Shown one piece after another: positions 5,825-50,498 of a stretch of DNA of 64,000 bases; position 1 is the stretch's first letter, and every line of letters starts with the position of its first letter. This stretch comes from Macrostomum lignano (Eukaryota): positions 1 through 64,000 of the forward strand of contig NIVC01003133.1 of the NCBI GenBank assembly GCA_002269645.1, given 5' to 3'. Under the pieces are notes generated by a model. The model saw nothing but the letters and a program-made list of their open reading frames with translations, searched no databases and was not told where the DNA came from. A program made the translations under genes and the position numbers.

Positions 5825-7393
5825 TCGCAAGCTTCTTTACTAAATCTGACAGTTTGGAGCAACGAGGGGGTAGTTATCGAAACTAAAACCTACCTTACAG
5901 CCAAGCAAAGAAGTTTTGAATGTATAATTAAAGAGCGCGGGGAACTTACTCAAAAATGTTCTGTCGGAAGAAGGGCCCAGATTTGCCTGTTTGAATTGGC
6001 TTCTCAAAAAGTTGCATTGATGAAAATCATGCTCAGCTATTTATACAATTTCTTTTCGCAAAGACAGCATTTTCGAAGAGAGACCACTACTACAGCTCAA
6101 TCTTTTTCGTCTGGTAAACTAGATTCTCGTAGATAGCTCGTAGTGTTGTAGGGTCAAGTGCTTTGTCAACTGAGGCGGATTTTTAATTTACTCCCCGAGA
6201 AAAACTTCTGATTGTCACGACTGTTTTTTTTACACGTTCAGGATAAACTCTAAAAATGATTTATGAAGTAGCTACCTGATAGGAATTTGTCCATATCAGT
6301 AGGTTCCCATGGTTCCCATTTCATTGTGACGTTGACGTTTCATCTGAATTCTCCAATTGTTCTTTCATTGTTCACTAAAATATTGAGTGTGCATCTTAAT
6401 TATATTTGTTATTTGTATTTATAACAAAATTATAATTATAATTAACTAAGGCATTTATAACATTTATAAATATAAATGATGTATCTATTTGTTATAATTT
6501 TAATTATAATTTCATCCCTAAATAAATTAATAATTAATAATTATTTAATGAATTAATTAAAATTATAACAAATATATATTTATACCGTATCATTTATATT
6601 TATAAATGTCAAATTTATTGGCGGTGACTAACAATACTTTGTTTCAGTGTATTAATGTCGCCGAAAGTCGGTATATTTAAACGGTTGAATTGTGTGGCTT
6701 CGTAGTCTTTGGAGGTCGTATGCTACAGCCATATACATGTAGCTAACAAGTTGATAACTATATAACATCGATCGACCGAAAACCAAAGTCGCATCGCATC
6801 CAATCAAGTACATTGTATTCTCACTAAAGGTCATCACCTCCGAAGCCGTGCCATTAAAAAATTTGTGATTCGTTACCTTGTCTGCTTAGCATCAGTACGT
6901 TAATTACTACCACAATCAGTGTCTGTGGAAAATACAAATTTACAAATTGCTTGCGCGCACTAGTTGACCTAGCAGCCCGTCAGCACACGAACTCTCACGT
7001 CAGATATTAGTCAAATCATAAACCACTTGTCGGACAAATTACAAGTGACAAATCGGCAAAACGTGACCACATATGCTCGAGTAAACCCCAACCTGACAAA
7101 TATAATGATTTTACTTCAAATGAAATTGCTTTGAAAACTTTAAAGACGAACGAGGCAATTAATATTTAATATAAATTTAACTCAGAAATTTAGCTCATCT
7201 TTGTATTATAATCAAACGTACAGTATTCAATAACAAACTAAACCGATTCAGTAAAAAACAGCCATTATTGAAACAAGTTGGACACCTACATTCATCACAG
7301 TCTCGTGTAGTCACAATACAATACATTAGTTTACATTACAAAAACGGTCAATTTCTCACATCTGAGAGCCGGTCCTCTACGACAGAATTTCCT

Positions 7394-10300
7394 GGGTCGT
7401 TCTCAAAGCTAGGTCACAACTTTTTGTTATTGCAAAAAAAGTTTATACATCGACCAATAATCGTACAAAAAAAATTCTTTCGACAATTTCTGTAAGAAGC
7501 TGCTACTAAAACCACAAGAAAACTTGAAATTGACAAGAAATCAAGGCTATTTGTTATTCTTTGTTGCGGAAAATAAACGACAAAAATATTAAAGAGAAAA
7601 TAAAATTTTCTTCTATTTTTATTTTAAATATGCAGTTAAATTTCTTTTGCAAAAATAAAAGAACAAGAAATTGACAAAGGAAATGTTTTTGAGCACAGCA
7701 TTTTGTTACTCTGCTCTAAATCCCAGACATTTAAAATTATCGTGTGCGAAAAAGTGCGAAATTATTATAGCATGCACTCGAAAGGACTTCGATCAGTTTA
7801 ACTAATCACTGAATTAAGAAGTCTAAATAAGTCTTGAAAGGTTGAATTAAAAATCAAGTTTTCACTATGTATCTTTTCAAAGTTAAGATGATTCGACAAA
7901 TAAAGAATGTTCATTTTTATGGTTAATAGAATTGTTTTCATTTTTACATTAAATATAATAAAATCTAACTAATAATAGAAAAAGTCAGGGAACTATCCTT
8001 GAACACCAAAAAGCACATTGTGAATTTAATATCGACTGCATGTTCCTTAATAAAGGAATTCGGATACTAGTATATATTTGATTATTTGTAGCATAATTTC
8101 TGAAAACTATAACTTGCTTGATTTTACTTTAAGTACTTATTACATTAATACTTATACCAAAGCTACATGTACTTAAAATAAAAAATTATAGTTACTTATT
8201 AGACATTTTACTCCAATTAACTTAAAATAATTCAAATTTATTTTAATTAATTCATTTTTTGAAACTTTTTGGAAAATAGACAAAATTGAATTATTTAATT
8301 ACCAAAAACCTACTAGCTTAACTAAAATAGCAATTAGTCTTTAAGAAAAGATTTCACTTGTTAATTGAGAAAAATGAGGATGTGCGAGGTGTAAAAATGC
8401 GAAAGAGCATGCAGGAAACAGAGACAAACAAAAATGTAGGTAAAAGACACTGCACATGCACATAATATGATAACCAGACATAATGCGCACACTGAAACAC
8501 CAGTAGCAATGACGCCCAAGCTTTTGATGATCACAAGTGAAAAGGCAAAACCCAGCCATCTAATCAAAGAAGTAGACTATAGCACGCATATTGAGTGCAT
8601 CACGCATTTTTTGCAGAGAAGCTCGAAAATTAACATTGTATTCTGTGCACAACCACCAACTGCGACAGGGTCTGCCGGGGGATTTGTGGGCACGCGGTCG
8701 CGGATACAAATCGGAGGAGTCGCTGACCATTCTGAAATTACTAGCTAGCACATGTAATTTTGTGTATTAATATATTTAGCCCGCTTTATTTCTATGCTCT
8801 CGTCCGCCTCTCGTTAATGCATCCCCAGACTCATGCAAAAATTAAACTTATGATCGAACTATGCATGGCTTCCGTCCCTCGCTTTGAATCTCTCACCTCC
8901 CCATAGTTCCATCAACCTTACCGTAGTGGCTTCCTATGCAAAAATCATCCCTCCGCATCTTACACAGGCTACTTCAGGCTGTAGACTGTACTACACTATT
9001 AATTAGTTGCGCTAAGGAATCTACATGTATTTTGATCGCAGCGCAGCGCGCTGCTCAAAGAAGTTTAGATCTATCTAGATATTCTAGTAATTTCAGGTTT
9101 GTCCATAGACTAGAGCTCATGAGATGAGAATTCCATTAACTAGTACATTTAATATGAATGAACAGCGTGTGTGTGTGCTGTGCATACATATGTATAATAT
9201 ACGAGTAGTTTATGGGCCAAATTATTGTGTGGCACAATTCTTGGCATCACTCAGCAGGCACAAGATGCAGTTAAGCAGCGCACGAAAATTCTACAAAAGA
9301 AATTGAGCCTGGTTGAGGTGATGCGAGGAGGCAGATCCACACAATCTCAGTGAATACACCAGACTGCACCAGATACGAGTCCAGTCGAATGTGCGCACTG
9401 GTCTAAGCAGCACACGCATGTCCTTCTGACAATGACGGCACCTAGCTTCGTCCAAGCCTTTGCCAGCGTCACTGACAGCGTCAATACTACCATGCAGTGC
9501 CACCTGCAGCACCGACAACGGCAATTCCTCCAGTTAGCCCACAACAGTGGCTAAACTGAGGGACAGGGAACCTACCCACAGAAGACACACACATACACAC
9601 ACAGCACCGGCAGCAGCATTCTGACAGCATAACCTAAAGCTCCATGAGCTCAGTTTTCAAGCATTGAAGAAGCAGAAGCAGTCATCTTGGATCCAGGGAT
9701 CAGGAAGAGTGTTGCATGTCCGACATGTGCTGTTTCCGTGGCAAAAGGTGATGGAGCAAATTAATCAACACTTACTATCTAGCTCGTATTAAGACTAAAA
9801 AACTGAGGCAAGCTGGGATTAAACCAAAGAAAATTTTTTACTATACTTTTTTACCATATACTTTTACTATACTTCTATAGTATAGTAGAGAGGTACTCTA
9901 TTTAAATGCAGTAAGAAGTGAAACAAATTTATATATTTAATTATTAAATTAAATTAATTCAAGGTAAATAACTAATTTAACCAATTTATTAGGAGTATTT
10001 ATTATTATAATAAATTGATTTTTATACCTTACACGAAATAAGCTCTACATTCATTTCTTAGCTTGGGGCCCATCTGTATAAGGTCAGTTTCTTCAAAATG
10101 CTGATTAATTAATTAAGGCCTGTTGTCTTTACTTAAATTTATAAGGGCATCTTAGAAGTTAATATTACTATATAATACAGGTATAATAGTATTACTATAT
10201 TATAATAATATAGTTGCAATTTTAATGACTATTGAATAAGTTTAAATGCTTCCCCTATTGACTCTAAATATATGGTATCTTTCCCTTCAGAAAAAATTAG

Positions 10301-11193
10301 CATAGAATGACTTGATGAAAACAAAAAAAATCATTTCGAGATACACATTTGCTGATCATTCAGGTCAAATTTCAAGGTCCAGTTTTGCACATGTTTCTCT
10401 GTAGCTTGGTTACAAGGATTTTAATAAAAATATAATAAATATGTCCAATGAACTAACTGATACATAGCCAAATTGAAGTATTTTCAAAAACAAAAAAAAT
10501 CATTTGCTCAGTTTACTTTACTGGATATCTGTGTAAAATTTCAGCTCAAAAGGTGCTCCATGGAGAATGCTAGTGTGGTTACAGGATATTTATTTTGTGC
10601 TTCAAAGTAGGAGTTAATTGCGATGCATGGTTGCTTTTAATTATTTTTATCAATAATAGTGCTCTATTTCATAACAATTTTTTACAAAAAGATAATAAGA
10701 CATGTTTTTCTAATTATCTGCATCAAAATGTATCATTTTAAGCGCACATTCTAGACGTCAGCTGAAAAATACATTTTGTGAGACGCAAAGAGGCTATCCC
10801 ACCGGAAATGCTAGGCGTCCAGTTAGCGTCTATAAAATCATTTATAGTGCAGTTTATTGAGCTTTAAAAAATTCTTAAATTAAATTTATATAAGCTTTCA
10901 TTTTAAATGTAATATAGCAAGGTTTCAACACAACAACAACTTTTTTAGCTACAGACATCTTGTAGTATCAAAAATTAACATCGGTGAAATGATTGAATTT
11001 GAATTTTTTCATCGCTAATTATCGCTTAATACCGCCAGATGATTAAAAACACTTTTGCATGATAAAGTTCAACCCAAAAATTATCTTTATTCACAGATAA
11101 AAGTGTCCTATTATTTTGAATATGGCAGTAACAATAGTAAATGTTCGGAAAATTGTTAAAATTTTTGCTCCTTCTAGAATTTGCGAACGACCC
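7394..11193 (+). mobile_element. 3.8-kb non-autonomous DNA transposon, copy 1 (short TIRs, 4-bp TSD; Sola2-like termini)
   Basis: Ends GGGTCGTTCTCAAA ... TTTGCGAACGACCC. Flanked by tcct/tcct. Near-identical reverse-complement copy at 27183-30989. No transposase ORF. Confidence 0.85.
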
Positions 11194-11331
11194 TCCTCTA
11201 CGCAAGACAGTACGATTCAAAATAATTAAAAAAAAGTTACAAATACACCAGCAAATAAAACAAAATTTAAAAGAACGACCAAGTCAAAATAGTAAAAAAA
11301 AATAATAACAGCCGGAGACCACCAGTCGAGA

Positions 11332-14300
11332 TCAAGCAACCGATGTGGCATTATCGGCTCGCTTGAGAAACTCTTTGAGTCGGGCATCCTTGGAATCGTC
11401 CGACATGCTTGAGAAGCTGGTGCGCAATGTCTGCAGAATTGATCAGTAGTGATGCGATCAGTTGGAGATACAGGTTTGATTTGCATTCAGCTAAATCCCA
11501 ATCCCATGCCTACTTATATAATAAGCTCACAATGTCACGCGGCACATAAGCAGCGCGCCCTAGCAACACCCTTTTGTTGCGTAACATTCTGATCACCCAA
11601 CAGTTTGATGAACTCAACTGAAGCAGCTGAATTACCAATGGCATTGGATAACTTTTGTTCCGTGTGACATCGTTTGTTAAGAGGGGTGAAGCTGGCGCTG
11701 GATACTATTACCTACGTACGATCATGAAAGCAAAATCTATGGATTGCATCAACAAAGGATGAAATTTAAAACAAATTTAAAAAATCAATAAACTCCTATC
11801 GATATAATGCAACGAACCAATGAGGGAATAACGAATTATAAATTAATTTTAACTCCTGCATCTACTGCTGCAAAAACACATAAGATATAACAGCATAAGA
11901 TTTCGAAGTATTTTAAATATACTTCCTTGTACTACCAAGCGCTAAAGGTTAGAGATATGTCAGTTTTCAATTTGCGTGATGGTGATAGTAAGTGTACTTG
12001 CTAATTTTAATAAATAAATAATTTTTGGTGTTTCAATCAATATGAAAACAGTACGAATACTTCCTGACTAACGTTGAGATATCATGGGATTACTAAAGGC
12101 ATGCATTTCAACAAAATAACTAAAAATTCGATGAAGGTAAAATTGACGCAAAATCTGGTGCGCAACGGCAGTGCAGGTATATATAAACTGTTGTAAGCGT
12201 TGCTTTTGTACACGGAAATAGCAAAATTTGCTAAAAAGCTCAGGTTTCACTGGGGATCAAGAAGCAGCAAATCAGCAAGCAAAGGAGTACACTTCCTACA
12301 GGTAGACTGTAGATTCCGTTTTCCAATATAATGAAGCTCACCATCTTTTTACATCGTAGGTTATTAGTTAATCTAATATTATCACCTTTATCTCAGTATG
12401 AAAGCTATTTCACTGGAAAATAGCGATGCTGAAGATGTAGGAAAATTATAGTTAAATATTTAGCGTTGCTGTTCAATATAATAAATCAATTATAGGTTGT
12501 AATGTAAGTGCCACAGAAAATTGAAAGCCTATGATAGTAATTTAAAGCCGAAAGCAGTGTAATAAAGATTCGTTCCAGAAGAAAGAAAAAATACGTAATT
12601 TGATATGTATACTCTTGAAAGAGCTTAGATGTTCAGTATACAGAAACTAGTATACAATCAAATTTATTGAAGTTAAGTAAGCATTAGAGTATCTGTCGAT
12701 TTCATCATAAACTTTGTTTTATGGAACTGATGCCTGCCTGCTTTCTCCCCTCTTCTAAAGGTAAGGGTGTTTGTGCTTTTTATCGATTGCTTTGTCTAGG
12801 TGTTTTTTATAGATTTTTGTCGGCCCTGAATCTTCACACTTACCCCGGTAGCACACCCCCTCTTCTTCTCGATCGCCTGTCTGGGGTGGATGGACGGTTA
12901 TCGATTTTCTAGTTGGCCACTCTAGCCCCACCGACCCCTCATTTTCTACCGCCCGCCACTTCTGATCGATCGATAACCCCTTATGGGGCCGAAGTCTTGT
13001 TTTGACTTCTTTAAGAAACCACATATACGCTAGTATTATATAGTGAATCACTTTACTCTGGACTCAGCAGTTTAAACAGCTTCTTTTCCCTATATGTCTC
13101 GTACTTTGCACAATAATTTTGTGCGAATCCTAGGAAAGCCAGTAAGATCCATATGGTTTAGAAAAATTTAAAGAATGAAAAACGAAAAATAGAGAGCTTA
13201 AAGTAATAGAACATTTTGAGATAAAATACCTTACGAGCGAATAACGAGCAGTAAACATATTTAAAGAGATGCTTGAATGCATACGCTCGTACAAGCGAAT
13301 CAATTTTCTACAGAAATTGCTATGCTTATACTAACCTTGACACTTCTAGGTGTCTCAGCAGCAGCGGCAGCGGCTGCAGCAGCCTCTACTTCTTTCAACG
13401 TGTTGAACAAGTTGGACCACATGTCCACCAGCGTTTTCTGACGCTCCGTGTGGGTTGCGTTCCTGTGAAAATATTTGTAAATGAAATATCATGAGAACGA
13501 TGTAGGAAAGCTGGAAATTTCCACTATTGTACGTAGCACGTAGCTCGTAGATCAAAATTCGAAATACCAATCTTAGAAAGTCACCATCAAGTGGTAACGT
13601 GCTTAGGGCTTTTCGTGCAATTTACGCCCAAGTCGTGCAAGAGCCAGCCTACCTGGGCACAGAGCGTGACTGTGTGTGCGTGCGTGTGCTTAAGGTTCAA
13701 GTTCAGTGTGTGTCGCCTTGATTTACGGCACGCCTTGATTGTTGCCCCATGATCCGGCAATATCTCTCTCACCTGTGCTGCAGGTAAGCGTCGGCCCTCT
13801 GTTCCACTTTGCAGTGGACAAAGCAGGGCACCTGCTGTACTCGCCGCTGCTTCCAGTAGGGCCGCATTGGCACCAAAATCTTCAGACTGTAGCAGAAAAG
13901 TCGCTCTTCATCGTTGCGAGCACTGACAGCGGCTTCGTCAGCGGCGGCAGTGACGTCTCCGTCGATGGCAGCTCCTGTCGCGTCAACGTCGCCTTCTCCG
14001 CTGGTCAACTCGCGTCGACCTCGAATGAAGAGGCTGCGACCGCCGGCTGCAAGGGCCCAGCCGCCCTGCTGCCACGGTTCGGGCAGCTGGTAGGGCGGTG
14101 GCAGGTTAAAGTGCAGCACCTCCCTGCGAAAGGCATCAGTCAATACAAGTTATGGATTATTAGATGGAGGAACTAAGGTATGAATAAAGATAGATTACGC
14201 AAGATTTGTTGAGTTAAACATAAGAAACATAAAAACACATTACGCGTAGATTAAAAGCATTACTGTTGTTTTTGACGTTTCAATATCAATGATACCATTT

Positions 14301-17300
14301 GAGGATACATAGGCTTCGATACGGTTACAATGCCTTCAAAGCCTGCCATCTGAGTTACTAATAATAATACCTAATTAAACCTTCACTATGCATCTTTTAC
14401 GAGGTAAGTCCCTACATGTATAATGCATCTTAGAGGAGATCGAGATAGAAGGAGGCTTAGTCGCGTCAGGCATCGGTGAACACAATAATAGTAAACATAA
14501 TTAAACTGCACAGTTGACAAAAGTAGCCACTATTGAAAAAACTCGTAATTTGACTATGAGGTTTTCAAGAAATTTAAACAAATCGATATATTACCTACAA
14601 AACAAAAGTAACAGTGTGGTAGCAGTTACCTTCCAAGACGAACGTCGTGCAACACAATGGCTCCACTACGGGTGGCCCTCAGCAGGAGGGTCGGATGACC
14701 CAGTGGATAGTAGTCCACCAGTTGCGGAGCCTCGTAAGCGTGCCTGGCGCTGTGCGGCAGCGGACTCGCTGTCGGAGGAGCGGCTTCGGGACCAATGTCG
14801 GCTAGGTACGGCTTAAGGTCGCTGTTGTAGATAGCGGCTCTAACAGGTTGAGTGGACCTGCGTTGGCAAGGATAGCTCAGGTAGTTTAATGAACAAGACT
14901 GGTTTGATTGGTTTCACCTTCGGATCTTGAGACCAGGGATGAGTTGCACTGGTCTATGAGGAATCAGACATGAGTTGCACTGGGCTATGAGGAATCAGAC
15001 ATGAGTTGCACTGGTCTATGAGGAATCAGACATGAGTTGCACTGGTCTTTGAGGAATCAGACATGAGTTGCACTGGTCTATGAGGAATCAGACATGAGTT
15101 GCACTGGGCTATGAGGAATCAGACATGAGTTGCACTGGGCTATGAGGAATCAGACATGAGTTGCACTGGTCTATGAGGAATCAGATATGAGTTGCACTGG
15201 TCTATGAGGAATCAGACATGAGTTGCACTGGTCTATGAGTAATCAGACATGAGTTGCACTGGTCTATGAGGAATCAGACATGAGTTGCACTGGTCTAGTG
15301 TGGGATCAATCAAGGATCGCGGGAAAATGGATGCACTTTAGTCTCTATAGTGATCAGTAAGCGGTGCTGTGATATCCGGCACATTTACTTGTAAATTGCC
15401 TGGCCTAGATTGTCGCTCTGCTCCTCGTCGGCCGGTGGATTAAGGAAGAAGACTCGAACGATTGGACGCGGATTTTCCGGATCCACGCTAATCACGTGAC
15501 GCACTAGGCCGAGTCGAAGGTCGTGTAAGATGAGGTTGCCGGACTCCAGGCCGACGGCAATCAAGGAGGCGCAGTGTGATACCGTGAGACAGGTAACTGG
15601 CGAACCGAAAGTCCAAACCGTCTCGGGGCGGAATTCCAGATCTGAGATGGATAGAGAAAGAAAGCAAGAAAAGTACTTTTTCATTATGGAATTAGTTTAG
15701 AGGAATTTTCTTTTTTAATTTTAGTTCCAGTGCTTCGCAAATATTTTCGTGTAGTCTAAAAACAGTGCATTTTACCCCGAAAGAGTGACAAAAAGTTAGT
15801 ACCTTGTAAAAAATTGGAATGTGCATCACTTGATTTAATTGCAATGGAAAAAACATTTAGAAAGCACTTGTATATGAGATGAAATTATCCTAATTAATTA
15901 TAGTTTCTTAATTTAAAAAAATTATATTGACGATTAATTGACTAAAATAAAATCGCGTCAAACAGAAAGAGTGATTGACAGTTAAGTTAGACTGGAGTGC
16001 AGAGAGGCCCGGTGAGATAAGGTCGTCCCGGGGAGTGGGGTGGCTGCAGCAGATTGGGGTGCAGAGAAGCGGGGTGAGAGATAGGTTGTCCCGGGGAGTG
16101 GGGTGGCTGCAGCAGATTGGGGTGCAGAGAAGCGGGGTGAGAGATAGGTTGTCCCGGGGAGTGGGGTGGCTGCAGCAGATTGGGGTGCAGAGAAGCGGGG
16201 TGAAAGATAGATCGTCCCGGGGAGTGGGGTGGCTGCAGCAGATTGGGGTGCAGAGAAGCGGGGTGAAAGATAGATCGTCCCGGGGAGTGGGGTGGCTGCA
16301 GCAGATTGGGGTGCAGAGAAGCGGGGTGAAAGATAGATCGTCCCGGGGAGTGGGGTGGCTGCAGCAGATTGGGGTGCAGAGAAGCGGGGTGAGAGATAGG
16401 TTTTCCCGGGGAGTGGGGTGGCTGCAGCAGATTGGGGTGCAGAGAAGCGGGGTGAAAGATAGATCGTCCCGGGGAGTGGGGTGGCTGCAGTGGATTGTGG
16501 ATCTTGGGTGCAGAGAGGCTGCGGCTGATAGATTTGATTGACACTGGTGACAATGTCATCAAGTCTGGTTTTATGAGAAATGAATTTGATACGGAAGTTC
16601 GTAATTTTTATCATTTGTCTTGAAACGATGGAAAATTTACAAGCTCGTGAAAATTACAGATAACTGATCTTTTACTATGGTGATAGATGTCTAATGGCAC
16701 TAATTTTGAATACTAATTTTTTGCTATATAGAACCAACCAGCCAGTTGAATTTGCCCTAATCGGCTGGACTTTAATTGTCTAGTTGGCGCAGTCATCTGC
16801 ATCACTGACGACCGACTCGACGCGCGTCCCAGCTGTTGAACATGACGACCTTCATCGCTGGTGGCAGAATCATCTGGATGATCGCCAAGTTTGGTGTCGA
16901 AGAGGAATAATTCGAAACCGGCATTTTACACGGTGCACTACTTGGTTAGTTAGTAGTAAAAGTGTGATACGAAATTTCGCGTCAGTGAGAAAATGTCTTC
17001 TTTTTTGGAACCTGTTGTGAATTAGCACCCTACCTGTTGTGAATTAGCACCCTACCTGTTGTGAATTAGCACCCTACCTGTTGTGAATTAGCCACCCTAC
17101 CTGTTGTGAATTAGCCACCCTACCTGTTGTGAATTAGCACCTATCTGCTGTGAATAAGCACCCTACCTGTTGTGAATTAGCCACCCTACCTGTTGTGAAT
17201 TAGCACCCTACCTGTTGTGAATTAGCACCTATCTGCTGTGTATAAGCAACCTACCTGTTGTGAATTAGCACCCTACCTGTTGTGAATTAGCACCCTAACT

Positions 17301-20300
17301 GTTGTGAATTAGCACCATAACTGTTGTGAATTAGCAACCTACCTGTTGTGAATTAGCACCCTACCTGTTGTGAATTAGCACCCTAACTGTTGTGAATTAG
17401 CACCCTATCTGTTGTGAATTAGCACCCTATCTGTTGTGAATTAGCACCCTATCTGTTGTGAATAAGCAGCCTACCTGCTGTGAATTAGCACCTACCTGCT
17501 GTGAATAAGCATCCTACATGTGGTGAATTAGCACCCTGCCTGTTGTGAATTGCGCCTCCATTACTTACTGCAGCAGAACTACAGTGTACCAACTACTTTA
17601 ACCATTCAAGTACATTGATATATTAGGCCAATATGCAATATATTAGGCCAATAGTACAGCCAGTCAAACGATAATTAACGTTGCACGTTCGATGTAATAT
17701 TGGCATCTTGGGTGTTGACTTTGACTTTGGAGTCCTCTGCTCAAGCAAGTATACCTCTCTCTTTCTGTCTGTCATACTTGACTTTGTTTGCTCTGTTCAA
17801 ATATTTGCTTAGTCAACAGGTTCTACGAGGCAATTGTATTCGCCGCTATGAAATGCCACTCTATGCTCTATATTAAGATATGTTTGCGTTTAATTCACTC
17901 TGCAGATGAACAATCTATAAAAAGGCTGCAACAAGTCAATATAGGTTGGAAAGTTTTTGTCGGCGCGTATTGTGGTAGGTTGGTGCACTTCGAATAAATT
18001 TCTGACTTGGGTAGCTGTAATAAGAAATACCAGCAAATGTTGGCTTTGCGCTCGTTATGCCGGTCCTTCCAACCGTTTTTTTGTTTGACTTGGACTTTGT
18101 CTTAATTGCTGGTTCTACGGAGCTGCCGGAATCCATCAACAAATCATGAACTAGTGCTGCATTTAGATAATGTTAGGAATGCTTTGTTTGAGGAGATTAT
18201 TGCACTTTTGATCAGCTAATTATATAAAGTTTGGTCTATTCAATTTTTTTAAAGAAAAAAGTTCCTAGAAATGAAATTTAGGAAGCCAGGAGGCAGAGAG
18301 TCGAGGCATGAGGTAGATGTTGTGGAATGTACGCGTACATCTAGGGGTAGGGGAGCTGAGAGGCCAGACGTGGGTGTTGTGAAATGTGCATCTAGGGGCA
18401 GGGGAGCGGAGAGGCCAGTCGTGAGGTGGGTGTTGTGGAATGTGCATCTAGGGGTAAGGGGAGCGGAGAGGCCAGTCGTGAGGTGGGTGTTGTAGAATGT
18501 GCATCAAGGGGCAGGGGAGCGGAGAGGCTAGTTGTGAGGTGGGTGTTGTAGAATGTGCATCAAGGGGCAGGGGAGCGGAGGGGCCAGTCGTGAGGTGGGT
18601 GTTGTGGAATGTACCTGCAATGTTAGGGGTACTAAGAGGCTTTTTGTAAAGTTGGTTCTCGGGTAATAAAGGTTAGAGGTGTTGAGAGACGAGTCGCGAG
18701 ATGGGCTATCATGGAATTTATGTAAGTACATCCCGATCTTCGAGCCAGAGCGCACCAATAAGTTGTACACTCACCTTTGCCCACCTTGAGCAGAGGGTAG
18801 ATAAACACTTTGTAGTCGCCTGACCAGGCCACAGCAGCGCTGACGCAAACATTCTTGTCCATTGTTTGCTCTGTGCCCTGAGTGCGGCCGGGCTTCAGGA
18901 ACTGGACAGTAGGCAAGCTGTGAATTTTACGGGTAAATTAACGGGACTTAAAATCATGCACTAATCGATAGATACTCGTATTTAGCAATACTTACGCCAT
19001 GCTAGCTGCCTCATTATTGTCGCTGTCCAACAGGTATTTCAACTCTTCCGGTCTTTCCCGTCTAAAATTTGCTTCGCGCAATTGCAGATGCGGCTGAGTT
19101 AGCAAGTGGGCGGCGCCACTGCCGACCACCTCGCCGCTGGAGTCGATGAGTTTAAGGTTTGGCGTGGTGGCGCCGGCTGTGGACGCCACCGGCTGGGGCT
19201 GGCGGACGCGGAGTACCGGTGCCAGCGGGCTGAGCTTGAGAACGGGCACGCGGCCGGCTTCCTCTGAGGCGGTGGGCTGTTGAAAAGAGGGTGTTTTAAA
19301 GAGCAGTAGCGCTTGGGAAGAATCTGAAGGTCCTTAATATTGCTTAAAGGTAGTCGCCGTCGTCAAATTTATTTAAAAATCACATCAAGAAATAATCATG
19401 CTGCCTTTTGGTCAATGAATAAAACGCATATAGTACAGGTTCGGGGATACAGGTGTCAAACGTCAAAACAAATTAATGTTTTCTAAAGGTATATATACAT
19501 ATCAAGAAAAATTCATAATTACTTTTATATCTAGTACGCAAGTTTGCGTCCACATTAGTACCTATGGGTTAACCTTGATGCTAAAAATGTAACAAGTCAT
19601 TGTATTTATTTGGATAATTTCATTGACCTTGAGGAACGCTAGGGCCTTTGCTTTACATAAAGTTGACTTTGTCTGCCGTCTATATCAAGGTCTTTTGGTT
19701 TTTCTCCCATGCCAAGGTCATTGGGGCCTGTACTTAACCCAAGGTCACTGTCATTCGAGCCTTCTCTCGACTCAAGGTTATTTGGGTCTTTGCCTACCCT
19801 AAGAAAGTTCTGGTCTACGTTAACTTTTAATGTCGTTTGATTTTCGAAAGGTCATTGGCGTGGTTCAGTTTTGTTCTATATGTACAATGTATCATGACAT
19901 TCGGTAGAAAAACTTATTCATTAGCCAAAGAGCGTTGTCTTTGCTTTGAGACTAAAAGGTTTCTAATACGCTTTGGATATTCTTTTAGTGGTAAATTTTG
20001 ACACAGAATAACCAAGTCAAACGAATCTACGTTTTCTACTGGTCTGGGTCTCTACTACGAGCTGTGTTACCCGTCGTCTGCTACCGCGCCTCCTTCTACT
20101 AGAGCCTCTGATCTCCGCGGCATTGGCCGCCGAAGATGAACGGCGACTGCCAGCAAAATTTTTGCTGCCGCCGCCGCCGCCGCCACCGCTGACTGATCTC
20201 GCTGAACGGCGGCTGCTGGCGCGAACTGAAGCAGAAGATTTTCTCGAGGCGGAGCCTCGACTGCTGCTGCTGCCACCAGCGCTGGACAGAATCGACTGTT

Positions 20301-23300
20301 TGCGGCCTGAAGGACGTCTCGCTTGACGCTTGAGTTGGCGTATTGTTGGTTTGTGGTTGTTGTTTAACGGGGTGCCGTAAGGCGTGGCTCTACCGCTGAC
20401 TAGATAGAATGGGTCTTCCAGGAGCGTATGCTCGGGCCACCTCAAGATTGGGTCCCTATGGAGCTGCCTTAAAAAGATGGCATACCTACGGAGGGGTTGG
20501 ATGCCAACAAAGGCTAAATAGTTAGGTGGTCCTAACTGCATGCGAAGCTGTTGTTTATTTGCAAGGCATGGCACCGCCAACCCGCTGAGTAGACCAGGTC
20601 TGGTCTCCTCAGAGACCATCATGAGCCGGCGTAAACTACTCATCAGGTCGACCATTTTTGGGCATGCCTAGGAAATGAATTCCCACACCGAAGAACTGAC
20701 TATCACCACAATACACGTGAGAGCCTGTCACTAAGGCACTGAACACATCTCCAATGCCTAGGATCCCTGATTCCGAGTGGGTCACGCTAACAGGGTACCA
20801 ACTTCTGGGGCTCATGCAGTCCTTTGATCAATTCCCGTGCCTTTCCTTGCCTAAGGTGTTCGATTGCTGGTACCAGCTTCTGGGGCACGAGGCCTGACCA
20901 GGTGGTCATGAATGTCAAAGTGAAGAAATTCAATTAAGCGCGGGTAAACGGTGAGAGTAACTATAAATCTCTTATTGGCCTTCGCATTGGCCTTGTTGGC
21001 CTTGTATGGAGCTGGAGAGGGGGTTGTGAAAAGAAGACGGACGAGTGGCTTCAGACGAAGATGGGTGTGTCAGCCGAGTCTTGGAAGTTGGTGTCGGTTA
21101 GAGTGCTGGAAGGCTCGGTTTGGTGCGCAGAGGTTTGTCATCGTAGGACAGGGGTTAGGTTTGCACGTACTGGTGTGCACAGTCGTGGGTGAGGTGAGGT
21201 GAGGCGAGGTGACATGAAAGCTCAAGGCATCCGCCCGTCAGTTCCATGAATGACGCTGCCTTCTTTAAAAGTTGGCTGATTTGACCACCTGGACGAGGGG
21301 GGGGGGGGTGATGCTACCCGGATGGTGGGCCAGCATAGGCTTGAGCATTATCTTCGGGAAGAATTTCCGGGACAGCTATATTCGGGTAAGAGCAATTGTG
21401 ACTCGTACTCTGACATGCGTAAAGTTGTAGTGCTCAAAAGTCAATGAAATGGGCCTAAAGTATCATGAAGAGCTGTCAGCCACCCCGCCCCTCCGAGTGA
21501 ATTCCCATAATAATTAATTTAATTACAAATGGTACCAACTATAGCAATATTGACCACTAAACCGGTCTTAAGCCAAAATTATTAAACATAAAGCGAATAA
21601 ATCTAACTATTGTTAATGCCTATAGCGTTGCTTATGCCAGCTTTCACGGCAAAGCACTACGTATTACCCTGCAAACCCTTGAACAATAGAAGCGTGAGTT
21701 TTTCGAGCCATATAGTTCTCATAACTTATTAATAAACAATCTCTCTAAATTAATGGCATCCAGAATTGTGGAACTTTTAAAGAAAAATAACACGGTTAAG
21801 AAAGTGAAATAAAGCTTAGCTTGTGTTTTACTAGATGAGGCAGATTGGAAAAACGGTATGTACGTGTAATTTCTGTTATATTGCATGCATAATGCTGCTT
21901 TAGACTGTCTGCATCAGATGCTTGTACGGTTTAATTTCTGGAATGAATAAGCTTGGCGTGCGTGCTTTCTTCGTTTCATTGACGCGCGCTTGAACAATAG
22001 GACTGTAAAACTCTTTTGGGCAAACACGCAGAGCTGATTAAACCGCAGTTGCCGCCCTCTCTCTCTTGTCGTCCCACAGGGCCCTGCTCTGCCCCCCCCC
22101 CTATAGGCTTAAGGCACAGTTCAATGAGAGAAGAGCCCGAGGCCTTTCAAGCAAGATATGCCAAGTTATAACTAGCTAATGCTAATATATATAGTTGAGA
22201 GCAAAGTTGCAAGAGCAGGCCCAACTCAGACTCTGGTTGGAGAGATTCGAACTAGACGAATCATGCCTATTATTGCGTACTGCTATCGCCTCATCACAGG
22301 CAGGTATCCGCGCTACGTTGAGTACTCGTTAAGGATGCTGGCTCTACTGGCAGGCGTCTGTCTCATATTCCTTCTATCCCGGATGCTGCTGCTCAGAGTT
22401 GACGAGTCCAACTCCGCCACGCTGAACGCAGAGAAACTCGCTCTGAAAGAAGCTAGTCTAGCACGCGGCACCGTCCAGCACGCCTGGAGGCAGTACCGGC
22501 GCCATAGTTGGGGCGCCAACGAACTGGCGCCGGGTGCTGTGGCGCCAAGTAAAGAGGCCGATCGATTGGTTGGGAGAAAATCCGGTTTAACTATTGTTGA
22601 AAGCTTGGCTACACTGCATCTGATGGGACTGGACGAGGAGCTGCTGCAGGTGCGTCATCAATATGGTTCACAGGTCGAAATATTTGGAGGTTTAACTAGC
22701 AACCTTAACCCTTGCAATCTCCCCCAAGTGGGTCATGCAGGCATCTCAGCGACTCCCCAATGAGCTTTGGCATTTCAGCAACTTTCAGCAACAGTAGATG
22801 TATAAAAAATGAAGCTGCATATAAACAAATATGAAAATGGAGTTAAAAATGATAATTTCTGTCATTAAAAAAACTCAAATCTCTGAACTGAAAAGTAAAT
22901 AATTAACTTGGCAACCCGCTTTCTCAATCGCAGGCACAAGAATGGATTGACAACCGTTTCGACTTTACTAACACAACTGAGCCCGTGAGCACAGCGGCGA
23001 CCAGCTCTCGCTTGCTCGGTGGCCTGCTATCGGCGTTCAGCCTCACCGAACACCTGCCGTTTCTCTACAAAGCCCTCCAGGTAGCCGAGGGCCTACTAGT
23101 GGCGTTCGACACTCCGTCCGGTTTGCCAGCATCAGCTGCTGTCCCCTTCCAGGGTCCCGTGGCCGCTGGCCGATTCATCAGTCTAGACGAGATGTCGCAG
23201 TTGTACCTGGAGTTTGCCTACTTGCACCGGCTGACCGGCTTGCAGAAGTATGGCAACGCTGCCGACGCTATTCTGGCGCCGTTGCGACGACATATGGACG

Positions 23301-26300
23301 CTCGAATTGCTTCACGCGGTGAGGCGATATTGGCGAATGACTCAGCAAGCATCGGTTTCAGCTGGTCACCGCCCGGCGTTTGGGATGTTCGAACTGGCGC
23401 TCCAACGATCGGCGCCGCATCGAACCTGTCGGGCGTACTAACCCTGGCCGAGGTGACAATCAAGGCGCACCTGTTGCTAGACGGGGATCGCAACGCTTTG
23501 AGTTTGTTTCAGGAGCTTCTGTCGGGTCGCTTACGCCTCGATGCTTGGCTGAACTGCCAGTCCGGGGTTGAAGAAGATGAGTGCGGCTTCAACCTTACCG
23601 TCTGTCGACTGGTAGAGACTCTCCTACTCAGCATGGGCCAGTCCCGGGATCCCTTTGTGCAGCGGGATCTGGCCTACCAGTTGGGGGATCTCTGCCTGTC
23701 AGCCGTGCAGCTCGGCAAGTTCAACTTGTGGCCAGATCAGCTGGTGCTCCGACGATCCGCTGCTCGGCACAGCTTTCAGCTGATGGAAGCGGCTGCGAAC
23801 GTGCGCTACTCCGCTCGGCCGGAACCGGTTTTGGCCGGCCTGCTGCTCTGGAGTCGACGGCGTCGGATGCGCCACCTGCGGCTGCTCAGCCTGACTCTCC
23901 GCTCCATCGCTCGACTGATGCGAGGATCGAACGGCTACGAGGGACTCCGTCGGGTGGCGGCTGCTGGCAGCCCAAAATCCAGTCTGCTTCACTCGGACAA
24001 CCGTCAGCCAAGCTACCTGCTCGGCCAGACACTAAAGTACATCTACATGGCGTTCAAGCCCAATCGGTTGAACTTAGTCAGCGGCGAGTGGGTGTTCAAC
24101 ACGGCGGGTCAGCTGCTGCCGGTGTGCAGCGGGCGACAGTTTGGTGAGCTCAGGCAGCTGGTGCTGAACAACTGGATCGAGGTGCGTCGCCAGCTGGAAG
24201 TTCTGGCGCTGGTGCGGCTGAATCGGCGCCGCAAAGGGTTCGGCATCGACTTGGACGAGTTGAGGGGCGCTGGTAGCGTTAGGTCACGTGATCTGCCAGG
24301 CACTCTGCTGATTGCTGTGGCTCCTGCATTGCTGACACTTTTCGCTCGACAATTCTCGATGTAATTTAGTTGAAGCAAGACAAAATTCTTTGTATATTCA
24401 TGTTTTCTATAAACAAATTTTAAGAATCTTCGCCAATGCAAGCGCTGGCAGAAGAACTACATATCAGTTAAAACACAAAAAATGCTTCACTACTTGAAGT
24501 GGCTCTTATAATTTATTTCAGTAAGTAAACAGCTCCTTTGCAAGGTGAAAATCTCTGTTTACGAGAGAGTCTTGATGAGTAGCAAAACGTTAAATTTAAA
24601 TTTAATAAAAAACTTTGGAATATAATATCTGACTGGCCTACTTATAGTAGCGCTGATAGAATACGATGAGGGGAAATCGTGTTGCACAAAAACTGTTGCA
24701 TAGAGATCAAAGGGCATAGAGATCAGGCTGTAGCACTGCTTACCCCAGAAGCGTCGCCTTCAGCTCCATTCGTAGCAGCGTCTCCAGTCCCGTCTTCTTT
24801 AATGGCGCCCGCTGCTCCAACGCCACCGCCAGCCTGAGGATTCGGCTTGCCAGCCTGCTGCTCCACTTCCTTAGCCCAGGCGTCGCGTGGGACCCGATGA
24901 AATTCCAACGTCACGGCTTTGGTTGACGCGTCTAATTTTGGCAAGACAAGCGTTGAGCATTGGATTTGTAGTTTGGCTTTAAATCAGGGGGGTCGGCAAA
25001 CTCCGGCCCGCGAAGAAGCCTCTCTATCCGGTATTTTAAAACTTCACAATAGAAATCTGACCTGCTCAACGTTATCCGTCTCACTGACTTACTGCCAATT
25101 ATACTGTCAGTAATTTGGCTCAAAAGGGCTTGATTAGGTCTTTAAATCTGTTTCCATTAACGTACTGTGACGACGTTAATCTAATCTCATTTGTTCTAAT
25201 CCTAATTCTCGACGTCTATTAAACAAGAACAGCACAAAATCGAAATACAAACAAGAAGAGAAAAAATTACTTTGCATAGTCAGAGCCAAATACTCGCCAT
25301 CGACAGACAGGCACGCAGCCAAACAGTTGATCCGTTTGTCGCCTTCGTCTTCGTTCATTAGCCTGGCCAAGTGAAAGGCGCTTCCATCCCATAGAAACAG
25401 CCGTGCCAGGCCCAGCTCGTCTATGGTAGCCAGCAGGTGCAGGCCCGGCTTCAGCTGGGCTGTGGCCATGTAGGCCAGGTCAAGTCCAGCCGCTTCAAAA
25501 GAGCCTACTGTTGCCATGGAAACGCCGTCCAAAGCGAACAGTTGACCGCCTTCGCAAGCGCAGAATACGTACCGGCTGCCGTACTGATCCACCGGCTCCT
25601 GCTGAAGGTCCGGTTCGTCAGCCGATGGGCAGAGAAACTTGATGGCTGATCGAATGTTTGGCACTATGCGGCACAGATCGGTGGGCACCTGGGGCGGCTT
25701 GTGCCTGAAAATTGTTTTTTATTTGAATGCGAAATTACCGTAGTTTAAAATGGATGTTAAAACTCGCTAGGCCAAGACTGCTAGTCATAGCTAGTATTAA
25801 ACCACTGCGCTAATCACTTCAAGGACGACTTAAGTCAAAGAAAACATTTCTTTGCATGTCCTGAGCGAAAAAGTTTCAGCGATAGAATGGCCTTCTATTT
25901 TGGTTCCTAACCAACTATCGAGCAAAGAAGCTAATCTGTTACCAATAAAAATCAATCCAAGTTCTTATCTGTCCGTAGTGCATTTTTTGCGCAAAATCAG
26001 CCCGAATATTTTTTTGTCTTAAGAAACGAAGTTTCCCGTCGTTTTAACTGAAGTCATTCTTGGCTCAACAACACTGTGGTCCGCAATTTTAACAGTCCCT
26101 GGTAGAATCGTATACTCGCTACCTGCAAGCTGCTCCTTACCTGGCCTGCTCGTGTTCTCGTTCTTCTTCGCGAGAGAAAATTTCTTGAAAGGAGCGCTCT
26201 AGCAGAGTCTCGATGAGCTTGTCAATAAGCCGATAGGGCTGCGGCAGCGGGTCCCGGTGCTTATCCGGGTCCAGCACGAAGTCTGCATCGATATCTGGAT

Positions 26301-27182: not shown

Positions 27183-30100
27183 GGGTCGTTCGCAAATTCT
27201 AGGAGGAGCAAAAATTTTAACAATTTTCCGAACATTTACTATTGTTACTGCGATATTAAAAATAATAGGACACTTTTATCTGTCAATAAAGATAATTTTT
27301 GGGTTGAACTTTATCATACAAAAGTGTTTTTAATCATCTGGCGGTATTAAGCGATAATTAGCGATGAAAAAATTCAAATTCAATCATTTCACCGATGTTA
27401 ATTTTTGATACTACAAGATGTCTGTAGCTAAAAAAAGTTGTTGTTGTGTTGAAACCTTGCTATATTACATTTAAAATGAAAGCTTATATAAATTTAATTT
27501 AAGAATTTTTTAAAGCTCAATAAACTGCACTACAAATGATTTTATAGACGCTTTAACTGTACGCCTAGCATTTCCGGTGGGATAGCCTCTTTGCGTCTCA
27601 CAAAATGTATTTTTCGGCTGACGTCTAGAATGCGTGCTTAAAATGATACATTTTGATGCAGATAATTAGAAAAACATGTCTTATTATCTTTTTGTAAAAA
27701 ATTGTTATGAAATAGAGCACTATTGTTGATAAAAATAATTAAAAGCAACCATGCATCGCAATAAACTCCTACTTTGAAGCACAAAATAAATATCCTGTAA
27801 CCACACTAGCATTCTCCATGGAGCACCTTTTGAGCTGAAATTTTACAAAGATATCCAGTAAAGTAAACTGAGCAAATGATTTTTTTTGTTTTTGAAAATA
27901 CTACAATTTGGCTATGTATCAGTTAGTTCATTGGACATATTTATTATATTTTTATTAAAATCCTTGTAACCAAGCTACAGAGAAACATGTGCAAAACTGG
28001 ACCTTGAAATTTGACCTGAATGATCAGCAAATGTGTATCTCGAAATGATTTTTTTTGTTTTCATCAAGTCATTCTATGCTAATTTTTTCTGAAGGGAAAG
28101 ATACCATATATTTAGAGTCAATAGGGGAAGCATTTAAACTTATTCAATAGTCATTAAAATTGCAACTATATTACTATAATATAGTAATACTATTATACAT
28201 GTATTATATAGTAATATTAACTTCTAAGATGCCCTTATAAATTTAAGTAAAGACAACAGGCCTTAATTAATTAATCAGCATTTTGAAGAAACTGACCTTA
28301 TACAGATGGGCCCCAAGCTAAGAAATGAATGTAGAGCTTATTTCGTGTAAGGTATAAAAATCAATTTATTATAATAATAAATACTCCTAATAAATTGGTT
28401 AAATTAGTTATTTACCTTGAATTAATTTAATTTAATAATTAAATATATAAATTTGTTTCACTTCTTACTGCATTTAAATAGAGTTCCTCTCTACTATACT
28501 ATAGAAGTATAGTAAAAGTATGGTAAAAAAGTATAGTAAAAAATTTTCTTTGGTTTAATCCCAGCTTGCCTCAGTTTTTTAGTCTTAATACGAGCTAGAT
28601 AGTAAGTGTTGATTAATTTGCTCCATCACCTTTTGCCACGGAAACAGCACATGTCGGACATGCAACACTCTTCCTGATCCCTGGATCCAAGATGACTGCT
28701 TCTGCTTCTTCAATGCTTGAAAACTGAGCTCATGGAGCTTTAGGTTATGCTGTCAGAGTGCTGCTGCCGGTGCTGTGTGTGTATGTGTGTGTCTTCTGTG
28801 GGTAGGTTCCCTGTCCCTCAGTTTAGCCACTGTAGTGGGCTAACTGGAGGAATTGCCGTTGTCGGTGCTGCAGGTGGCACTGCATGGTAGTATTGACGCT
28901 GTCAGTGACGCTGGCAAAGGCTTGGACGAAGCTAGGTGCCGTCATTGTCAGAAGGACATGCGTGTGCTGCTTAGACCAGTGCGCACATTCGACTGGACTC
29001 GTATCTGGTGCAGTCTGGTGTATTCACTGAGATTGTGTGGATCTGCCTCCTCGCATCACCTCAACCAGGCTCAATTTCTTTTGTAGAATTTTCGTGCGCT
29101 GCTTAACTGCATCTTGTGCCTGCTGAGTGATACCAAGAATTGTGCCACACAATAATTTGGCCCATAAACTACTCGTATATTATACATATGAATGCACAGC
29201 ACACACACACGCAGTTCATTCATATTAAATGTACTAGTTAATGGAATTCTCATCTCATGAGCTCTAGTCTATGGACAAACCTGAAATTACTAGAATATCT
29301 AGATAGAACTAAACTTCTTTGAGCAGCGCGCTGCGCTGCGAGCAAAATACATGTAGATTCCTTATAGCGCAACTAATTACTGAAGTAAAAGTGTAGTACA
29401 GTCTACAGCCTGAAGTAGCCTGTGTAAGATGCGGAGGGATGATTTTTGCATAGGAAGCCACTAAGGTAAGGTTGATGGAACTATGGGGAGGTGAGAGATT
29501 CAAAGCGAGGGACGGAAGCCATGCATAGGTCGATCATAGGTTTTATTATTGCAAGAGTCTGGGGATGCATTAACGAGAGGCGGACGAGAGCATAGAAATA
29601 AAGCGGACTGAATATATTAATACACAAAATTACATGTACTAGCTAGTCATTTCAGAATGGTCAGCGACTCCTCCGATTTGTATCCGCGACTGCGTGCCCA
29701 CAAATCCCCCGGCAGACCCTGTCGCAGTTGGTGGTTGTGCACAGAATACAATGTTAATTTTCGAGCTTCTCTGCAAAAAATGCGTGATGCACTCAAGATG
29801 CGTGCTAAAGTCTACTTCTTTGATTGATGGCTGGGTTTTGCCTTTTCGCTTGTGATCATCAAAAGCTTGGGCGTCATTGCTACTGGTGTTTCAGTGTGCG
29901 CATTATGTCTGGTTATCATATTATGTGCATGTGCAGTGTCTTTTACCTACATTTTTGTTTGTCTCTGTTTCCTGCATGCTCTTTCGCATTTTTACACCTC
30001 GCACATCCTCATTTTTCTCAATTAACAAGTGAAATCTTTTCTTAAAGACTAATTGCTATTTTAGTTAAGCTAGTAGGTTTTTGGTAATTAAATAATTCAA

Positions 30101-30989
30101 TCTTGTCTATTTTCCAAAAAGTTTCAAAAAATGAATTAATTAAAATAAATTTGAATTATTTTAAGTTAATTGGAGTAAAATGTCTAATAAGTAACTATAA
30201 TTTTTTATTTTAAGTACATGTAGCTTGGTATAAGTATTAATGTAATAAGTACTTAAAGTAAAATCAAGCAAGTTATAGTTTTCAGAAATTATGCTACAAA
30301 AAATAAAATATATACTAGTATCCGAATTCCTTTATTAAGGAACATGCAGTTGATATTAAATCCACAATGTGCTCTTTGGTGTTCAAGGATAGTTCCCTGA
30401 CTTTTTCTATTATTAGTTAGATTTTATTATATTTAATGTAAAAATGAACAATTCTGTTCACCGTAAAAATGAACATTCTTTATTTGTCGAATCATCTTGA
30501 CTTTGAAAAGATACATAGTGAAAACTTGATTTTTAATTCAACCTTTCAAGACTTATTTAGACTTCTTAATTCAGTGATTAGTTAAACTGATCGAAGTCCT
30601 TTCGAGTGCATGCTATAATAATTTCGCACTTTTTCGCACACGATAATTTTAAATGTCTGGGATTTAGAGCAGAGTAACAAAATGCTGTGCTCAAAAACAT
30701 TTCCTTTGTCAATTTCTTGTTCTTTTATTTTTGCAAAATAAATTTAACTGCATATTTAAAATAAAAATAGAAGAAAATTTTATTTTCTCTTTAATATTTT
30801 TGTCGTTTATTTTCCGCAACAAAGAATAACAAATAGCCTTGATTTCTTCTCAATTTCAAGTTTTCTTGTGGTTTTAGTAGCAGCTTCTTACAGAAATTGT
30901 CGAAATAATTTTTTTGGTACGATTATTGGTCGATGTATAAACTTTTTTTGCAATAACAAAAAGTTGTGACCTAGCTTTGAGAACGACCC
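27183..30989 (-). mobile_element. 3.8-kb non-autonomous DNA transposon, copy 2 (inverted relative to 7394-11193)
   Basis: Colinear reverse complement of copy 1 with scattered substitutions; the same small ORFs recur. Flanks are tatc/aatc (3 of 4 match). Confidence 0.85.
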
Positions 30990-31669
30990 AATCGCATCAT
31001 CGCATGTCTTAAAAAATGTCGCGAATTAACTTAGTTGAACTAGTAAAGTGACCAAAGTAAATGTGAATTTTACGCATAGCTTTTTAAAAAAATGTCTGTA
31101 TTCAAATATAAAAACAATTTTACTGCAGAAATACAATTAATAGTACATTTTTTGCAATGTAAACCTCCAAGTTTTTTTTAACATTTTGTTTGACTGCTTT
31201 AAGTTCGCAAAAAATTTAAGCACCTTTTCAAAAGCAGCTAATTATCGTCGTAAAAGTATTTTAAATCAGAAAATGCTGCTTCGCAAGAGACAATTTTTTA
31301 TTTTAGTATAAGACGAATTAAAGAAGACAAACAATGTAAACATATATAAATTTTTGTGCTTACCTCAGCCACTTTCAGTATCCGTGAACAATTTAGGTCT
31401 ACTATGACTCCACGAGTCTGATGACAGTATTTTTTTGCTTTTAATTTTTTTATTATTACTCCTCACACTCACACAGCTACTAACTGTAACCGTCGAGAAC
31501 AGTGTTATTTTAAATTTAGTTTAATCAGGCTATAGTCAAAATTAGCCTTGAGAATGATATAGCGAAACAAACTGGAAGATCGCCTCAAAATCATGCTATG
31601 CCTATAGGTGCGACAGAAGCTATCCCATAATATTTTTTTGAAGTGTGCTCAGTGGCATAATCAGAAATT

Positions 31670-43500: not shown

Positions 43501-43657
43501 TAATATTGCATGATTTGAACAATTCTTAGCATTTGATAAGCCTGGGCACTTCAATGTACACATCTCTCTTAACGCCATCCTTATTGAAGGTTGCTTTCCA
43601 AACAGGTAGACAAGAACTCTTGAAGGCACCTTTATTAAAGGCTATCAGCAACACTTT

Positions 43658-45987: not shown

Positions 45988-46180
45988 ACAATTGAAGCCA
46001 TTGAAGCCATTGAAGCCATTGATGGTAGCCATTCTAGTTAGTCTTTCACAAGGGGCAATTCCGACCTCTCCTGTACCAAACCACGTGTACTTTTAAAAAA
46101 ATGCTGCTTTTTTATCGTACTCGTAGCCACTCTTTTTAACATTGGTTATCGGGCTTAGTGTTTGAACATGGCATATCTAG

Positions 46181-50498
<4,318 letters not shown>

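Follow-up and report, generated by a model that had tools for sequence, protein, structure and literature searches.

An intron of the WDR93 gene in the flatworm Macrostomum lignano holds a chimera of about 490 bases, in which a decayed piece of the 28S ribosomal RNA (rRNA) gene is followed by 15 nt, by the end of the open reading frame (ORF) of the retrotransposon R2, and by the R2 3' untranslated region (3'UTR). It lies in a 64,000-nucleotide stretch of contig NIVC01003133.1 (assembly GCA_002269645.1), which we call the window. We consider the chimera to be a single, ancient and dead retrocopy that the retrotransposition machinery of R2 placed outside the ribosomal genes, and put the probability of this reading at roughly 0.7. 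It is a new flatworm example of a phenomenon already described for ribosomal DNA (rDNA)-specific elements in Drosophila. An earlier note, made from the letters of the window alone, had recognised the join and left its origin between a one-off retroposed co-transcript and a non-autonomous family spreading outside rDNA; we favour the former, because the only second copy lies at a paralogous locus with the same flanks.

Two sequences served as references. The first (L001) is a real M. lignano rDNA unit on contig NIVC01001213.1, used for both the 28S and the rDNA-resident R2, and the second (L003) is a paralogous locus on a 1.72-Mb M. lignano contig, NIVC01000012.1. Comparisons of copies covered the 64-kb window, L001 and L003, while protein searches covered sets of 5.8 and 1.8 billion sequences. 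L001 has 5.8S and a full-length 28S into which 2.78 kb are inserted: the last 28S bases before the insert are ...GTAACTATGACTCTCTTAA, ending at 3095, R2 starts at 3096, and the insert ends at 5877 against TAGCCAAATGCCTCGTCATC, with TAGCCAAATGCC beginning at 5878. This position is the classical R2 site, between ...CTCTTAA(GG) and TAGCCAAATGCC. The interrupted 28S of L001 (499-7038) is followed within 1.8 kb by a U1 small nuclear RNA gene (8842-9003) and after that, at 10049-12829, by a gene for a 927-aa protein with a 2-oxoglutarate (2OG)-Fe(II) oxygenase domain; the unit is either the edge of an array or itself an orphon.

The positions of the parts of the chimera are collected in Table 1. Its 28S piece terminates at ...CTCTTA (20974), one base before the 5' junction of R2 in L001, and agrees with the 66-80 nt first estimated from the letters: 66 nt are unambiguous (20909-20974), and inclusion of a more diverged start brings the total to 81 nt, with 88.9% identity to L001. 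A scan of the whole window with Rfam gave a single match, to LSU_rRNA_eukarya at 20897-20987 (52.2 bits, E=2e-09). An Rfam run in E-value mode on 19500-22500 did not relist this match, and a gathering-threshold search of L003 missed the 28S fragment there, which BLAST detects. Between the 28S and R2 lies the filler of 15 nt, which aligns poorly to R2; together with adjoining bases it makes up a triplet of TTGGCCTT, and a single similar copy, TTGGCCTG, stands at this place in the rDNA-resident R2. The same filler is found in L003 with two substitutions, and it probably arose when a 5'-truncated R2 copy joined the 28S.

By homology, the sequence that follows is bona fide R2. The peptide encoded from 20974 to 21192 matches M. 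lignano PAA70690.1 with E=8e-21 and 69% identity, and the tail peptide matches residues 673-736 of the 738 in A0A1I8JJP2 with E=2e-19 and 70% identity (HMMER, 1.8 billion representatives), so that the test set beforehand for the 20998-21192 peptide, a match to R2, came out positive. A tblastn search places the R2 tail at 20992-21186 (69% identity), and the nucleotides of the ORF tail are 82% identical to L001 5409-5550. The window peptide corresponds to about the last 60 residues of Bombyx mori R2 (from about 1055 of 1114), downstream of the K..KY motif of the restriction enzyme-like (REL) endonuclease. The proposal that these roughly 65 codons are the C-terminus of an R2 endonuclease therefore stands as regards the C-terminus of the R2 ORF, but they lie beyond the catalytic motifs and are not part of the endonuclease core. 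When the 73-aa tail was searched directly with phmmer against all PDB chains, no R2 protein was listed at E<=10, only designed repeat proteins; the tail is therefore linked to the R2 of Bombyx and of birds transitively, by way of the M. lignano ORF. That ORF, A0A1I8JJP2, matches the Bombyx mori R2 structures 8gh6 and 8ibw with E=1.5e-70 and bird R2 proteins with about 1e-40. Its alignment with Bombyx R2 falls into three stretches, covering the C2H2 finger, the region after the reverse transcriptase (RT), the CCHC motif and the RPD...D...K..KY endonuclease through to the C-terminus, and extends as far as residue 1096.

The RT core lacking from the A0A1I8JJP2 gene model is present at L001 3710-4260, and the model is probably an artefact rather than a real, internally deleted element. 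The M. lignano element thus fits the layout of the R2 clade, one ORF with a zinc finger/Myb part at the N-terminus, an RT, and a CCHC motif and REL-type endonuclease at the C-terminus. Its first 39 residues are translated 28S rRNA (L001 1134-1250). We considered this N-terminus as a second 28S-R2 fusion and rejected it, a gene model that splices 28S to R2 being the best fit.

Downstream of the stop codon the 3'UTR is collinear with that of the rDNA-resident R2. Two high-scoring segment pairs (HSPs) pair 20990-21300 with L001 5409-5747 and 21311-21376 with L001 5793-5867, which takes in the ORF end and almost all of the 3'UTR and stops 10 nt short of the R2 terminus in L001 (5877). The direct join of 28S to the end of the R2 ORF and its 3'UTR is thus borne out by alignment to L001, as is the identification of the 3'UTR itself, though not the extent first given to it: it ends at about 21376-21386 and not at 21490, and 21387-21490 matches neither rDNA nor R2. 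A second decayed copy of upstream 28S was considered at 21381-21459, on the strength of a score of 34 against 20.3±4.1 with permissive gaps (p of about 0.008, in one of four tests), and was rejected when stricter scoring, with both strands of the whole rDNA compared, made it disappear (22, shuffled mean 21.9). A predicted fold would be common to the 3'UTRs of the chimera and of L001, with a 43-nt insert specific to L001 forming a hairpin loop; it has no covariation support. Searches of both protein sets with the R2 tail gave only tails of rDNA-resident R2. A short Logan contig, likewise ending at TAGCCAAATGCC, supplied a third and more distant R2 tail (47% identity). This contig (L002, from ERR13905422, 1029 nt) is a degenerate R2 3' end adjoining TAGCCAAATGCC, and its tail peptide has the motif LEGSV.CAE in common with the Macrostomum R2 tails.

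The chimera might have been an artefact of assembly, and the paralogous locus is decisive on this point. Window positions 16239-25073 correspond to L003 3957-12805 in a single HSP of 8.9 kb with 94.3% identity, and L003 carries the chimera with identical junctions between flank and 28S, between 28S, filler and R2, and between R2 and flank. Since the junctions are reproduced on a second, independent contig with 5.5% divergence, they are not a product of assembly, and since the second copy has the same flanks over 8.9 kb, it reflects duplication of the locus and not transposition. A further candidate for an independent copy (L004) was rejected, being the window's own contig and identical to it letter for letter (window coordinate = L004 + 12232).

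A three-way comparison of the window and L003 copies with true 28S and rDNA R2 separates changes common to both copies from those in one alone. In the 28S part nine differences and one 2-nt indel are common, with one difference confined to the window and one to L003; for the ORF tail the corresponding counts are 46, three and four, and for the 3'UTR 43, six and one. Both copies descend from one insertion that preceded the genome duplication of M. lignano, a species recognised as a recent hidden polyploid (PMC5704211, PMC10733133). The 28S part had gained about 6-11% substitutions before the locus was duplicated, and the insertion is older than that duplication by an interval some two to four times as long as the period that has followed it. 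Of the seven differences between the window and L003 in the ORF tail, five are amino-acid changes, and divergence of the element keeps pace with that of its flanks. Mostly non-synonymous differences and a flank-like rate indicate neutral evolution without coding constraint, and the element is dead and neutrally decaying, with no discernible function.

Searches for further components were negative. Sensitive BLAST and Smith-Waterman comparison with the whole rDNA, on both strands, found no downstream 28S beside the element, and the Rfam and rDNA searches of the 64 kb found no other rDNA or R2; the earlier note was right on both counts. There is no second copy of the chimera in the window and no extra copy in L001 or L003. 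Within 19500-22500, Rfam gave no match at E<=10 to an HDV-like ribozyme or to any other ribozyme family, and none to its R2_retro_el model, only chance matches to other families. A miss would be expected if that model is built from Drosophila R2. No poly(A) follows the 3'UTR. Exact-sequence look-ups of the window ORFs that span the element returned nothing on record.

In proposing how the chimera was made, we need to explain why its right end is fixed at the R2 3' terminus while its left end lies at an arbitrary point in the upstream 28S, which is the signature of a retroposon. We suggest that the source was a single rDNA unit containing a heavily 5'-truncated R2, no more than its last 390 nt or so, joined to the 28S at ...CTCTTA through a few extra bases. 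Copies of R2 truncated at the 5' end result from incomplete first-strand synthesis (PMC4370867). The pre-rRNA made by RNA polymerase I would keep such a truncated R2 fused to the upstream 28S, because a copy that has lost the 5' ribozyme is not released from it; retention of up to 36 nt of upstream 28S is reported for R2 RNAs (PMC3774820). R2 protein, supplied in trans by an active element, would then have bound the 3'UTR of the co-transcript, a region it needs for reverse transcription (PMC3414825). Target-primed reverse transcription would have begun at a nick in the WDR93 intron and not in the 28S; since synthesis starts at the R2 3' end, the downstream 28S would not have been copied. The cDNA would have run through the short R2 remnant into the upstream 28S and been joined to the target 81 nt further in. 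In support of this, no more than about 5 nt separate the end of the R2 part from the true 3' end of R2, and the downstream 28S is gone, whereas upstream 28S of the same age retains 89% identity. That reactivated elements may move fragments of rDNA around the genome has been suggested in review (PMC10946416).

Several points weigh against this explanation. What was observed is the structure, homology, junction positions and duplication history of the locus; a truncated source copy in rDNA, an RNA intermediate, an R2 protein that acted in trans, and the way in which the nick arose are all inferred. The target point and the 3' boundary are approximate, and the insertion may have come with a small duplication or deletion. 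No target-site duplication stands out in the flanks, where the best match was 10 bp (score 20; shuffled sequences averaged 18.3 and reached 30), and two exact 10-bp matches, TGAATTCCCA and GGTACCAACT, were rejected as candidates because they are at chance level. Given the high site specificity of the R2 endonuclease, and flanks that do not significantly resemble its 28S target, something other than R2 may have opened the nick. Finally, the count of copies covers the window, L001 and L003 only.

A relocation of R2-bearing rDNA as DNA, without an RNA intermediate, whether as an orphon, as filler at a double-strand break or through capture by a mobile element, would account for the lack of poly(A) and of a target-site duplication above chance, but both are also normally missing from R2 insertions. 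Fragments of rDNA are known to disperse (reviewed in PMC10946416), and the R2-bearing 28S of L001 lies within 2-3 kb of non-rDNA genes, which demonstrates that rDNA and unique DNA do adjoin in this genome. However, the right breakpoint would have to fall by chance about 5 nt from the R2 3' end, precisely where reverse transcription starts, and there is no other rDNA debris in the vicinity; we regard such a relocation as unlikely.

The alternative originally raised was a non-autonomous family, dispersed outside rDNA, in which a 28S head precedes an R2 3' tail. On this reading, R2 protein would have carried read-through co-transcripts to non-ribosomal sites, and the family would be peculiar to Macrostomum; it is very improbable on present evidence. 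The unit does have a complete-looking 3'UTR, as the R2 protein requires, and there are precedents elsewhere in the R2-dependent short internally deleted elements (SIDEs; PMC3414825) and in a short interspersed element (SINE) derived from 28S (PMC4994717). Yet its sole second copy arose by duplication of the locus, no further copy is present in the sequences compared, protein searches yielded only R2 tails resident in rDNA, 19500-22500 contains no 5' ribozyme or other Rfam match, and both copies decay at the rate of their flanks.

Two further possibilities have even less to recommend them. A normal R2 insertion into an ectopic 28S pseudogene fragment would explain the site of integration, given that R2 endonuclease needs 28S to cut, and an ectopic 22-bp 28S site is used by R1 in D. 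ananassae (PMC2718515); but the downstream half must then have been deleted from exactly the R2 3' end, and nothing significantly similar to downstream 28S is found in the 3' flank, against 89% preservation of the upstream half, so we give this little credence. Least probable of all is a template switch, in which reverse transcriptase copying R2 RNA at the WDR93 site jumped to free 28S rRNA: R2 reverse transcriptase does jump to other RNAs in vivo (PMC3414825), and there are extra repeated bases at the junction, but a jump should land arbitrarily, and a 28S end within 1 nt of the R2 site implies a junction inherited from an insertion in rDNA.

The proposed ectopic reverse transcription of a 28S/R2 co-transcript has analogues in other organisms. 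Like the 5'-truncated, standard dead-on-arrival R2 copies found in 28S genes (PMC2718515, PMC4370867), the chimera comprises 28S up to the R2 site, a few extra bases and the 3' portion of R2 to its exact end, and its ORF tail and 3'UTR are homologous to the R2 in the host's rDNA; it differs in lying outside rDNA, in lacking the downstream half and the remainder of the 28S gene, and in being flanked by the intron of a protein-coding gene. Incomplete and diverged R2 copies outside rDNA exist in Drosophila (Stage and Eickbush 2009, PMC2718515), and melanogaster-type R1 copies inserted outside 28S bear a transcript-derived stretch of 7-28 bp from the upstream 28S (PMC2718515). These are likewise ectopic, rDNA-specific elements that lack long terminal repeats (non-LTR elements), with intact 3' junctions, but the present case concerns a flatworm R2, has a longer 28S tag (81 nt), lies in a euchromatic intron, and has an age that can be set relative to a genome duplication. 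As the copy is severely truncated and lacks its own 5' end, its tag would come from read-through of a truncated rDNA copy and not from a 5' processing site.

The resemblance to other short elements is less complete. R2 SIDEs (Eickbush and Eickbush 2012, PMC3414825) are also short, retain the R2 3' end and depend on protein in trans, but they have a 5' ribozyme, insert at the 28S site and occur in multiple copies, whereas the chimera has no ribozyme, lies outside 28S and is known as one insertion with its duplicate: its 5' part is 28S and 15 nt followed directly by the ORF tail, and its flanks are WDR93 intron. SINE28 (Longo et al. 2015, PMC4994717), one of the SINEs headed by rRNA, similarly has a 28S-derived 5' part in a short retroposed unit, but it is a multi-copy mammalian family mobilised by L1, whereas neither multiplicity nor the L1-type hallmarks, poly(A) and a target-site duplication, are seen for the chimera, and its 28S part is accounted for by the R2 insertion site. 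Chimeras produced by template switching (U6-L1, and U12/tRNA-R2, PMC3414825) also consist of two RNA-derived parts joined head to tail, the 3' end of a long interspersed element (LINE) being on the right; here, the junction coincides with the genomic boundary of R2 and 28S, and inheritance from an rDNA template is simpler.

Table 1. Features of the 28S-R2 chimera and its host locus, in window coordinates.
Feature	Position	Strand	Evidence or remark
Decayed 28S fragment, 81 nt	20894-20974	+	88.9% identity to L001 28S 3016-3094 (BLASTN)
Junction filler, 15 nt	20975-20989	+	Read from sequence; poor alignment to R2
R2 ORF 3' end, about 66 codons	20990-21192	+	Frame from 20992, stop 21190-21192
R2 3'UTR remnant	21193-21381	+	3' end uncertain within 21376-21386
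WDR93 segment	25179-25718	-	Pfam PF21030 positions 11-113; as exon 25176-25688, E=1.3e-11
WDR93 exon region, 5' bound of host intron	24726-24983	-	PF21030 positions 113-143, E=0.005
WDR93 exon region, 3' bound of host intron	18995-19333	-	PF21030 positions 148-217, E=0.003
WDR93 segment	18635-18937	-	Pfam positions 232-281
WDR93 segment	15388-15696	-	Pfam positions 285-319
GH47 alpha-1,2-mannosidase gene, nested in the same WDR93 intron	22179-24364	+	Pfam Glyco_hydro_47

The genes of the window (WDR93, GH47, a CAMTA-like gene and a protein with a GPS motif) are all of animal type according to Pfam. The location of the chimera inside a WDR93 intron, claimed from the outset, is confirmed: on the minus strand, five Pfam pieces of WDR93 follow one another in collinear order and the WDR93 gene model of NCBI extends across the locus, and the host intron, of about 5.4 kb, falls between Pfam positions 143 and 148. 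The WDR93 ORF itself had no match at E<=1e-5 in the set of 5.8 billion proteins. The GH47 gene begins about 0.85 kb downstream of the chimera on the strand opposite to WDR93; its 459-aa ORF at 22985-24364 is 100% identical to M. lignano BOX15_Mlig007829g1. Its L003 paralogue is 91% identical to it, and the nesting of GH47 in the WDR93 intron is kept there. Just upstream of the chimera, a GC-rich block at 20017-20655 on the minus strand contains a 212-aa low-complexity ORF rich in Ser, Arg and Gly, which has no Pfam match and is not a called gene on record; it may be an exon, a CpG-like promoter block or a repeat.

Elsewhere in the window, neighbouring host genes include CAMTA-like ORFs at 46331-50498 (plus strand), with a CG-1 domain and then IQ motifs, and, at 2984-4834 (minus strand), an ORF with the GPS (G-protein-coupled receptor, or GPCR, proteolysis site) motif. 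The window is rich in minisatellites. Two long arrays of a 15-nt unit (ATGGTTGCCTTGAAG or its complement) lie in opposite orientation at 40757-42211 and 43657-45991 and give rise to hundreds of inverted-repeat pairs and to ORFs of 500-800 aa that are spurious, and there are more than 20 further arrays. A 3.8-kb segment is present twice in inverted orientation with 98% identity (27184-30997 and 7393-11193), and the copy on the right is inserted cleanly where the paralogous contig has an empty site, between L003 15150 and 15151. The segment ends in an imperfect terminal inverted repeat (TIR) of about 20 nt, GGGTCGTTC[G/T]CAAA..CTAGG, has no ORF of at least 130 aa, and looks like a non-autonomous DNA transposon that was mobile after the genome duplication.

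This analysis reveals no new mechanism or class of element, and its interest is modest unless dispersed copies exist genome-wide; if the chimera did represent a family, an element with strict rDNA specificity would have been the origin of a dispersed, SINE-like one. As a natural case of off-target R2 integration it is of some interest at a time when R2 proteins are being engineered for transgene insertion. For M. lignano, the chimera marks both subgenome copies of the WDR93/GH47 locus with a shared derived character. For R2, it provides a clean and datable case of an rDNA-specific retrotransposon integrating outside rDNA with upstream 28S in tow, and it supports ideas derived from Drosophila, namely that R2 templates are co-transcripts with 28S and that dead, truncated copies may be used in trans.

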